Source: Zootoca vivipara | Taxonomy: Eukaryota | Reading direction: 5' to 3' | DNA length: 64,000 nt | NCBI RefSeq assembly: GCF_963506605.1 | Contig: NC_083290.1 | Coordinates: 26,164,001-26,228,000, forward strand | In this document: in pieces, positions 28,901 to 31,900 of the stretch | Layout of the letters: each line of letters opens with the position of its first letter | Numbering within the stretch: position 1 is the stretch's first letter | Notes under the pieces: generated by a model | The model's input: the letters and a program-made list of their open reading frames with translations, nothing else | Told to the model about the DNA's origin: nothing | Database searches by the model: none | Translations under genes and position numbers: made by a program

Positions 28901-31900
28901 TGGGGCTGAGTCCTGGCTTAAATTAAGCTCTTCTCCCTTTGAAGCCCAGACCCCTGCTCTTTCTCCTGTCCACTTCACTTGGTCTAGAAACCTGGGCAGG
29001 GCCACATCTCTTCCGTATTCTGTATTGCTGCATGCTTCAGTTGTTGTTGGGGCATGCAGGTGTTAGCCAGCAGAGCTGTGAGGCCTTCTGGGTGGCTGAG
29101 TTATATTTTTAGGTATATCGTATCTTTGCACTTGCTCAAGGCTCCTCCCTGCCTTCTCCTAGGCCTGAGCTTATTGACGCCTTTAAGAGTTACACTTTGG
29201 ATTCTTCAGCAACTGTTCCACCAGCCTCAGTGCCTCCTCCTCCTCCTCCTCCAGCAGCAGCTCCCCCCACGCCAGCAGCTCAGCTCTCGGCTCAAGCTCC
29301 AGGCAGCTCCTATCCTCCCCACATGCAGGTACAGTACAGGCCCAAATCACTATTTCTCTTACTGTAACCTTTATCGTTTACAGTGGTGCCTCGCTAGACG
29401 GGTCTTTTCTTATAACGAAAAATTCGTCTAGCGAATCCCATAGGAATGCATTGAAATTTTTTGGAATTTTTTTTGCCCATAGGAACGCATTAATTGAATT
29501 TCAATGCATTCCTATGGGAAACCGTGATTCGCTAGATGAATTTTTCGTAAAACCTCCACTAGAAAAAACCTTTCGTTAAGCGGAAATTTCGTTAAGCAGG
29601 GCATTCGTTAAGCGAGGCACCACTGTATTATTCTTTTGTCTTCAAACTTTATTCCTGTTTCCATGCTGCAAAAACAATGTAGGGTGTGAGCTTGCATTTA
29701 AAGGCAGCAGAACTGCCTTTAAAGGATTGTTGAAATGGAGGGTGAATAGTTTCTGCCCTTGGCAGATTGGCACATGTCTCTGTGTGGGGCAACTATTTAC
29801 TTATTTATTTTTATTTATCACAATTATATCCTACCTTTCCTCCATGGACCTCAAACTGGCATACTGCTTCCACAGCCCCACTCATTTCATCCTCACAACA
29901 ACCCTGGGAGGTAGGTTAGGCTGAGACACTGTGACTTGCTCAAGGTCACCCATTGAGTTTCATGGCTGAGCAGGAATTTGAACCCTGATCTCCTAGGTCC
30001 TAGTGCAACACTAACTACTACACCACATTGACTCAATTAGTGGTATTAGCTGGTTGATTTTGCTCCCTGCCAGGAGAAAACACACACACACATGTTGTGC
30101 TAACTAACATGTCCACTGCTAGAGAGTGAGGAAGTTTCTTTGGGTGCCAGAGAATGTCCCTCTACCTTATCCTCTACAATGCTGTAGGAGGAGGAGGAAT
30201 GACCACTCAGTTCACTGTCCATGGAGCAGTTACGCCCTGTTTCCCTCCTTTCAATCAAGCATTGTGTTAGGAAGACTGAGGACTGTAACCACACTGTTTG
30301 GCCTTGCCTTTTGGATTGGGGATTGTTGCTGTTTGGTTTTAAGAGACCTGTTCATACAGACTTTTGTACTCTCTACTTCCCTAGATTCTTCTCCCTGCTC
30401 TCTCACCCACAATGACAATGGGCACAGTTCAGAGATGGGAAAAGAAGGTTGGTGAAAAGCTAAGCGAAGGAGACTTGTTGGCAGAAATTGAGACAGACAA
30501 AGCTACGATAGGTGAGAAGCTTTTAAATCCTAAACATATAAAGCTTTGGAGCAAAGGGTGGGGGACTTGTGGCTCATCCAAAGTAGCTAGATCCCACCTC
30601 CCATCAGTCTCAGGCAGCCAGCATGGTCAGAGGTAGTGGGTGTTGTGGTCCATTAACATTTGGAGGGCTGCAGGTTCCCCTCCCCTAGTTTGGAAGATTC
30701 TTTACTATTTGCATTTCATAAATAATAGGTAATGCAGACAAGATTCCCTTCTCTTCTTACAGCATTGGCTGATACTGAGGAATCTAAAACATTACCCTAT
30801 CTCACTACAGCAACAGGTGCTCCAGGCTTGTTATCTTATTACATGAAGATCTCTCCTCAATTAGAAGAACTCTGTGGATTACATCTTCCAGATTTTCTAA
30901 TTTAAATATTTTATTTTGTAAATAATACACAATTAACTTATTTGCTGGAATCTCTCTCTCCATAGCAGGATTGTGAAGTTTCCTTCAGTATTGGTTTCCC
31001 TAGTGATTGTTTCCTTAAACAATTTCTCTCCGCTTAAGGCTTTGAAGTACAAGAAGAAGGTTACCTGGCAAAAATCTTGGTGTCCGAAGGCACGAGAGAT
31101 GTGCCCTTAGGAACTCCCCTCTGCATCATTGTGGAGAAAGAGTCTGACATTCCAGCGTTTGCAGACTACAAGGATGCTGGAGTAACAGATATCAAGCCTC
31201 CGGTGCTGCCTCCACTCCCAAGTCCTGTAAGTACAACCTGCATATGTGATACCTCTGGTGGGGAAATGTTTGCTTCTCCTGTGCAGAAAGATCTTGTTGC
31301 TCTAGAAATTATCTCCACATAGGAGAGATGCAGGATTGCTTCTACAACCTGATCAACTGTGTGCTGCCTGTTTTCATATATTTGCAAGGAAAGGGGCTAC
31401 AAGACAGCTTAGAAAGACACCTTTCCTATCTGTCTGCTAGATTTTGTTCTTCAGAGGCTTGGGGAGCTTTTCCTGAGTCACTGAGGCTGTTTTGCCCACT
31501 TCCCAACGTATGTAATCCCCCCCAATTCAGTACACTCCTCTCTCTCTCTCGGGCCTCTTCTAAGTAAGATGTCCAGCTCCCATTAGGACCCTGCATTCTT
31601 GGGTCATGCATGTATTAGTGCAATTTCACTGTGGTACTGTGTACTGGACTTGAGCGGCTGCTGCTGTGCCCCATGCCAAACACCCATCCATCTAAATAAA
31701 AAAAATTCCTTCAGTAGCACCTTAAAGACCAACTAAGTTTTAATTTTGGTATGAGCTTTCGTGTGCATGCACACTTCATCAGATACCACCCATCTAGTCA
31801 AGCACAGGTTGGAACACTGGGGAATTCCCACGAGCCTCCCATGTGTTGGCATCTAACTAAACATTTGGCCTTCTCTTTTCTGTTAAGGCAGCGGCAACAA

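Follow-up and report, generated by a model that had tools for sequence, protein, structure and literature searches.

What kind of sequence is the 92-nt insertion found at positions 31695-31786 (minus strand) of a 64,000-nucleotide stretch of the Zootoca vivipara genome (contig NC_083290.1, positions 26,164,001 to 26,228,000; hereafter the window), within the gene DLAT? The insertion begins with a hammerhead ribozyme. The initial annotation put it forward as a member of a discrete ~90-nt family resembling short interspersed elements (SINEs) or retrozymes, mobilised by a resident Penelope-like element (PLE), and gave stopping of the reverse transcriptase (RT) at the ribozyme fold as the alternative. 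Our analysis revealed a genuine 92-base insertion derived from the hammerhead end piece of a lizard Penelope-like retrotransposon. It is the module running from the hammerhead to the RT start site of such an element, a kind of sequence that is already known. As to its origin, the account that we favour, with about an even chance of being right, is that the insert is a non-coding product of a lacertid PLE, most likely dead on arrival, and arose as the run-off cDNA of an RNA starting at the hammerhead.

On the minus strand, the insert (insert A) opens with the first base of hammerhead helix I. The minimal type-I hammerhead occupies 31749-31786 (minus strand), reads GTAT-CTGATGA-A-GTGTGCATGCACAC-GAAA-GCTC^ATAC and has an intact core. 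Helix I consists of 4 bp (GUAU/AUAC) and is followed by the core CUGAUGA, an unpaired A, helix II (GUGUG-CAUG-CACAC), GAAA and the palindromic AGCU that would form helix III in a dimer; cleavage is predicted at C^A, between 31753 and 31752. Judged against the descriptors of Cervera & de la Pena 2014 (PMC4209133), insert A shows all the traits of the minimal hammerhead ribozymes (min-HHRs) of PLEs, namely the 4-bp helix I, the unpaired base between A9 and G10.1 and the long helix II. A helix III hairpin is absent, and the palindromic AGCU could pair only with a second copy. Rfam reported no hammerhead family for insert A, either at gathering scores or at E values up to 10; this silence is expected because the motif has no helix III hairpin, and it is not evidence against a hammerhead. 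For min-HHRs, published cleavage is weak and requires dimerisation or protein (PMC4209133; PMC11167929).

The hammerhead is followed by 43 nt of linker and conserved 3' box (31706-31748, minus strand; ACUUAGUUGGUCUUUAAGGUGCUACUGAAGGAA) and then by a T8-ATT end (31695-31705, minus strand). The latter is a tail-less 3' end corresponding to RT start site 1, and loose ends occur genome-wide at the equivalent positions 35519/35520 of a longer copy in the window, copy C. The upstream copy of the target-site duplication (TSD; 31787-31796, minus strand; TAGATGGGTG) directly abuts the insert and matches the 10-bp downstream copy (31685-31694, minus strand; TAGATGGATG) at nine of ten positions. The probability of two 10-mers matching 9/10 in this register within the window is ~3e-5 in theory and 9e-5 empirically. 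The start at the helix-I base, the full core, the T-rich end and the 9/10 TSD of the initial annotation were thus all found in place. So was the lack of an open reading frame (ORF): the frame from the ATG within CUGAUGA closes after 22 codons, on which ground an ORF start inside the hammerhead, as in the Anolis element PAc, was also rejected. The core is CUGAUGA in copies A and E and CUGAAGA in copies B, C and D, as had been claimed; core position 7 is a free N in the hammerhead descriptor CUGANGA (PMC8557442), so the difference is uninformative on activity.

Analysis of the window revealed five copies of the hammerhead module (A-E), so that insert A has four relatives, and three of the five extend upstream into the Penelope RT/GIY-YIG ORF. 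Copy C is a long, 5'-truncated Penelope-like copy (35478-37262, minus strand) flanked by a 13-bp TSD (35465-35477 and 37263-37275). Its module lies at 35478-35607 (minus strand; hammerhead 35570-35607, tail 35478-35519) and its RT/GIY-YIG ORF at 35785-37011 (minus strand), an open frame of 408 codons with the domains RVT_1 and GIY-YIG. Relatives of this ORF number 512 among PLE-type proteins; the named proteins closest to it come from lacertids (83-86% identity) and turtles (~70%). At position 35570 copy C has ATAT, compared with ATAC in nearly all genome copies (A>G, 95-99% of depth); the change is private to copy C and leaves helix I with an outer G-U pair in place of G-C. Copies B and D are the head-to-head arms of a fold-back Penelope insertion (22590-24197) with the 13-bp TSD TATTACAAGGAGG at 22577-22589 and 24198-24210. 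Arm D (22590-23785, minus strand; 1196 nt) has no tail, and its 3' end stops at GGAA (element position 81); arm B (23785-24197, plus strand) is a 413-nt inverted arm with the full tail. The outer ends of this insertion are element 3' ends on both sides, as would be expected if priming took place on both target strands, which has been reported for PAc.

Copy E (45013-45096, plus strand) is a second short, tail-less copy that belongs to an older subfamily and is 88% identical to A. The similarly bounded copy that had been placed at 45008 is therefore real; it carries the 10-bp TSD TTGCTTCTGA (45003-45012 and 45097-45106), and its 5' junction is ambiguous over 5 nt, with TCTGA common to the TSD and to element positions 4-8. 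Insert A is 97.7% identical to copy B over 88 nt and 96.6% identical to copy C. The conserved 3' box is invariant across all five copies, the linker excepted. A 42-nt tail, ATTTTACTTCGATCCAGACCAACACGGCTACCTACCTGTAAC, follows the T-run in B and C and is found in none of A, E and arm D, in agreement with the earlier remark that insert A lacks the terminal tail of the long copies. TSD lengths are 10 bp for A and E and 13 bp for C and B/D; these duplications and the shared 3' module bear out the claim of insertion by Penelope machinery. Insert A thus shows the features of a PLE terminal fragment: continuity with copies carrying RT and GIY-YIG, a PLE-type min-HHR, a TSD of variable length and 3' ends at the RT start. 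Pattern scans of metagenomes and viral contigs gave no match.

Over 81 module positions, A differs from long B/D at 2 positions and short E differs at ~10. The short form would thus have an origin in two subfamilies or more, with A grouping among the long copies in this comparison. Among the five window copies short and long forms are interleaved, a pattern that the initial annotation had named as counting against its proposal and that speaks against the short copies being a separate clade.

The decisive test of the short form as a discrete class was the genome-wide distribution of its ends. Reads and contigs were aligned at 85% to copy C plus 800 nt of upstream sequence (window 35390-36400), and the helix-I G at 35607 was numbered as position 1. 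Four runs were used: DNA contigs of the same species (X1), DNA contigs of a second lizard species (X13) and two sets of raw RNA reads (X21 and X22). Depth in the hammerhead bin was compared with the mean of the 22 bins further upstream. The ratio was 6.4x in X1 (8.1M against 1.27M), 19x in X13 (543k against 29k), 42x in X21 (3513 against 84) and 16x in X22 (1860 against 114). In all four runs depth falls exactly at the first base of helix I. Because the step is seen in both read orientations, its cause is copy number and not transcription.

On the upstream side, the loose ends with the best support were at 35607 in X1 (80 contigs) and at 35606-35608 in X13 (116 contigs), and the 5' stops scatter over a few nucleotides only (35601-35608). 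Flanks of the helix-I loose ends (median 255 nt) are AT-rich and heterogeneous (agreement 0.37-0.41), resembling those of true 3' junctions (0.44-0.47). A loose end at 35608 in the RNA runs (agreement 0.52-0.54) represents a diverged version of the upstream PLE sequence. The module is present in ~10^5 copies, an order of magnitude taken from rough word depth (X1, unique flank depth 58) and not a true copy number. The short form thus constitutes a discrete length class, as the initial annotation had supposed, with a 5'-end peak at helix I genome-wide in two species and not a smooth spread of truncations. A second abundant subfamily with a different linker, ATACCTATGACAAACTTAG, to which copy E belongs, was detected as loose ends at 35567/35571 (agreement 0.74-0.81) in both species.

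Ordinary random 5' truncation, with two short copies starting at the hammerhead by chance, can hardly explain why, in two species and all four runs, the depth step and the loose-end peak fall on a single base, even though PLEs are heavily 5'-truncated and single min-HHRs have been attributed to truncated PLEs (PMC4209133).

Read orientation over the module (35478-35607) is skewed ~3:1 in X21, and 84-88% of X21 and X22 reads continue into unrelated flanks. The RNA signal over the module is thus for the most part host read-through of embedded copies, and insertions in genes are probably orientation-biased.

The 3' ends are equally discrete and fall into two classes, one at 35476/35478 (position 130, the end of the tail) and one at 35519/35520 (position 88, the end of the T-run). 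According to the loose ends of RNA reads, tail-bearing copies (130 nt) and tail-less copies (~88-92 nt) occur at ~70:30. The view of a unit of specifically ~90 nt was accordingly not upheld, the tail-less form being the minority (~30%) of a 130-nt unit. Two such ends are known from PAc, where reverse transcription begins internally at two adjacent sites and the interval between them is the optional tail of genomic copies (Frangieh et al. 2024, PMC11167929). The spacing agrees as well: the PAc tail is ~34 nt long (~+85 to +119 from A9; PMC11167929), and in the lizard family analysed here the tail spans positions 89-130 from helix I. In the modelled fold of the 130-nt RNA, the conserved box GUUGGUCU is predicted to pair with AGACCAAC of the tail. 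Tail-less copies would lose this RT-start stem, because the tail supplies its 3' strand.

What, then, sets the 5' end? Cleavage by the ribozyme was rejected as its source, since copies begin at position 1, whereas cleavage would have them begin at position 35. At the cut site (35573) the four runs showed neither a top-ranked loose end nor a peak of read starts, and RNA read ends were not in excess at 35574/35573, where standard RNA-seq would miss RNAs of 90-130 nt. Likewise, no reads beginning at the ribozyme cut are reported for Anolis PAc (PMC11167929). A one-round copy of a circular RNA was rejected for the bulk of the copies: it would place the tail upstream of helix I in tail-less copies, and no tail is found there in A, E or the loose-end consensus. 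A 5'-cutting ribozyme, hepatitis delta virus-like or other, was also dismissed, as Rfam gave no match and only 4 bp pair at the 5' end.

Further candidates concern the sequence around the boundary. Most genome copies that cross it have 35609 G>C (G at -2), giving TTTCAG/TG at helix I. This boundary, together with positions 35615 and 35616, reads as both splice-acceptor-like and initiator-like (BBCABW), and it recalls the D. virilis Penelope intron that ends at helix I. A splice acceptor at the boundary, as in D. virilis, was nevertheless rejected as the origin of the ends, because splicing makes no free 5' end and the loose ends have no common upstream exon. The simplest remaining reading would be that the template RNA begins at helix I. 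In both mapped cases, D. virilis Penelope and Chlamys-3, PLE transcription starts in the pseudo-long terminal repeat (pLTR) (PMC2377424, PMC8557442, PMC6765202); in D. virilis Penelope transcription begins 46 nt ahead of a 75-nt intron (PMC2377424) that ends exactly at helix I (PMC4209133). The long copies of the lizard element have a CATAAG box 24-29 nt upstream of the helix-I G, with CACCC and GC boxes further up, and most genome copies that cross the hammerhead boundary have a YR, initiator-like TCAGT/G there. The first loose letter behind 35607 is an extra sense G in three runs, which is a weak hint of a cap-templated G.

On the account that we favour, the PLE transcript would start in the upstream pLTR, at or within a few nucleotides of the helix-I G, the candidate start. 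An RNA starting there would have one module at the 5' end and another near the 3' end. Bound beside a module, the PLE protein would initiate reverse transcription internally; if the 5'-proximal module were used, or if the complex jumped between the two repeated modules, the cDNA would run off the RNA 5' end after 88-130 nt and would then integrate with a TSD. Ribozyme cleavage would have no part in defining the insert.

Several observations weigh against this account. The RNA runs show no excess of read starts at 35607, where the depth from embedded copies would hide one, and the best initiator match places A(+1) at -3 and not at the helix-I G. No full-length copy is present within the window, so that the 5' start of full-length insertions is not visible here. 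The template requirements known for PAc come from a different PLE clade member (Anolis Poseidon), with an ORF that starts inside the hammerhead. Copies numbering near 10^5 would be many for something that is only a by-product. Finally, long copies of diverged subfamilies fall below the 85% needed for alignment and account for some of the depth step, so that the ratio of short to long copies is over-estimated.

The rival that survives best, which we nonetheless regard as unlikely, is a self-propagating non-autonomous family whose 88-130-nt units, single or tandem, are transcribed from their own copies and use the PLE RT and endonuclease in trans. The discrete 5' and 3' ends and the very high abundance in two species agree with such a family, and the short form shares with SINEs a 3' end common to the autonomous partner, a discrete 5' end and a TSD. 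Most tail-bearing genome copies, moreover, differ from the long copies of the window at 35506, 35507 and 35514. Vertebrate non-LTR retrozymes have been reported as pLTR-derived non-autonomous partners of PLEs with many solo monomers, the reptile consensus averaging 176 bp (bioRxiv 10.64898/2026.07.22.740005). Retrozymes have at least two tandem hammerhead units; here the locus has a single unit. Genome-wide, one joint among those listed links two units in tandem, with TA between the tail end and the helix-I base (35607 to 35478). In view of this joint and of the reported retrozymes, a self-propagating minority may exist among the short units. The head of a SINE, derived from tRNA, 7SL or 5S RNA and holding an internal RNA polymerase III promoter, was not detected: Rfam gave no match up to E = 10, ARAGORN gave none, and A and B box matches in the unit were no better than those in shuffled sequences.

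The choice between this rival and a by-product draws on the five window copies and on the biochemistry of a relative. The by-product is favoured because a polymerase III head is absent, the candidate promoter is located upstream of the unit and does not move with it, the short copies lack the ~50 nt downstream of the tail required by PAc in vitro (PMC11167929), and a single min-HHR does not cleave as a monomer (PMC4209133). The family reading is further opposed by the near identity of short A to the long copies, with short E in another subfamily, and by the absence from tail-less copies of the 3' strand of the RT-start stem. The lack of a tail upstream of helix I in A, E and the loose-end consensus argues against propagation through a one-round copy of circular RNA. 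Of the SINE/retrozyme-like family originally proposed, the discrete class and the insertion by Penelope have stood; the polymerase III promoter, tRNA-like head or tandem partner that would complete it have not been found.

A second possibility concerns the enzyme. The RNA would extend upstream, and the RT would stop or dissociate after the hammerhead at a protein or structure 5' of helix I, much as a template boundary works in TERT; long copies would then be read-through. The sharp stop (a few nucleotides of scatter, 35601-35608) suits this proposal. So do the protein-assisted hammerhead of PAc, which implies that protein contacts the region (PMC11167929), and the position of PLE RTs as the closest relatives of TERT (PMC8557442). 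We consider it quite unlikely, however. With PAc in vitro, each truncation of the RNA 5' end from -126 onward gives shorter insertion products (PMC11167929), so that the RT must get past the hammerhead and run to the RNA end. A structural block should also halt the RT 3' of helix II and not after the whole motif, and the hinted added G at the first loose letter fits an RNA end better. The alternative of the initial annotation, RT stopping at the ribozyme fold, fits poorly on the same grounds: the stop comes only once the hammerhead has been copied in full, and the PAc RT reads through its own. That the hammerhead-to-RT-start module either is the mobile unit itself, with its own transcription and copying in trans, or is cut to length by a telomerase-like template boundary is, on the whole, doubtful. 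If it were true, this would be the smallest known ribozyme-bearing retroelement (88-130 nt), and the PLE hammerhead would gain a length-defining role.

Solo pLTRs would also yield a fixed 5' end and intact TSDs, if full-length insertions began with the 130-nt module and later DNA recombination between modules deleted the body. We hold this to be improbable. To yield ~10^5 products, a repeat of 88-130 bp would be a poor substrate for recombination, tail-less A and E would require a tail-less 3' module, and the first module must still start at helix I, so that an RNA starting at the hammerhead is needed in any case.

The host gene was identified as DLAT, on the plus strand, by motif search: the lipoyl motif IETDKATIG is at 30490-30504, the E3-binding domain motif PLAKKLA at 31984-32004 (plus strand) and DHRVVDG at 38373. 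The PLAKKLA motif lies just downstream of insert A and fixes the host gene, its strand and the intronic position of the insert, which is flanked by the exon encoding the second lipoyl motif (30490) on one side and by that encoding the E3-binding motif (31984) on the other. Since the flanking exon motifs are both on the plus strand and the insert is on the minus strand, insert A is intronic and antisense to DLAT, and its reported location in a DLAT intron is borne out by all three motifs. DLAT was not detected by a Pfam search of the large ORFs of the window. The insert is expected to be inert at this locus, being antisense and having no partner hammerhead for dimerisation.

Two other features of the window were recorded. 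A tRNA-Lys(TTT)-like sequence at 40590-40662 (plus strand) was detected by Rfam (37.7 bits) and ARAGORN, with several acceptor-stem mismatches; it could be a tRNA-derived SINE head or a decayed tRNA gene. A palindromic repeat of ~165 bp that matches itself in reverse was found at 37834-38000 and also at 33141-33281, 6581-6698 and 231-365 (at least four copies in the window); it looks like a miniature inverted-repeat transposable element and is unrelated to the Penelope copies.

Much of what is seen at this locus has been described: single min-HHRs from truncated PLEs (2014), the tail and internal initiation (2021, 2024) and PLE-derived non-autonomous hammerhead repeats (2020, 2026). A sharp 5' boundary at helix I was not found in the literature examined, which did not include Lunse et al. 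2017. What the hammerhead does in endonuclease-bearing PLEs has explicitly been described as unclear (PMC8557442). In two lizard genomes the commonest insertion product begins with the first base of the ribozyme, and the copies bear no trace of its cut site. For annotation, this means that ~10^5 'hammerheads' in lacertid introns and untranslated regions would be inert single-copy leftovers and not regulatory ribozymes.

Comparison with known systems places the insert closest to the truncated PLE insertions with a pLTR min-HHR (PMC4209133), which have the same min-HHR architecture and mostly occur as scattered single copies away from any ORF. As in that set, relatives in fold-back and partial-tandem form are found nearby, and the fold-back arrangement of D and B is like the typical PLE layout drawn in Fig. 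2 of Craig et al. 2021 (PMC8557442). In that set, single motifs were called 'probably truncated PLEs' and no preferred 5' end was stated, whereas here the 5' ends pile up at helix I. PAc (PMC11167929) shares two 3' ends ~35-42 nt apart, an AC-rich tail forming a stem-loop, a similar hammerhead spacing, the absence of reads starting at the ribozyme cut and a coverage over the module region far above that of the body. It differs in that its ORF starts inside the hammerhead, where the frame analysed here is soon closed; the proteins here are closest to lacertid and turtle PLEs, and in those parts of the PAc report that we consulted, its text and legends, no 5' boundary at the hammerhead is described (PMC11167929).

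Metazoan non-LTR retrozymes (PMC7229834; Li, Clavereau & Pollet 2026) are likewise non-coding, carry a type-I hammerhead, derive from PLE pLTRs, are presumed to be mobilised by PLEs and include many solo monomers. Retrozymes are tandem, self-cleaving and circularising units, usually of 170-400 nt, with canonical hammerheads, whereas insert A is a lone 92-nt monomer with a minimal one. Unlike in retrozymes, the unit here is delimited by the RT start site and the helix-I base and not by the cleavage site. The schistosome SINE-like retroposons Sm-alpha and Sj-alpha (PMC6765202) are also short, dispersed and hammerhead-bearing; they have a promoter ahead of the hammerhead (PMC6765202), whereas no internal promoter was found in the lizard unit.

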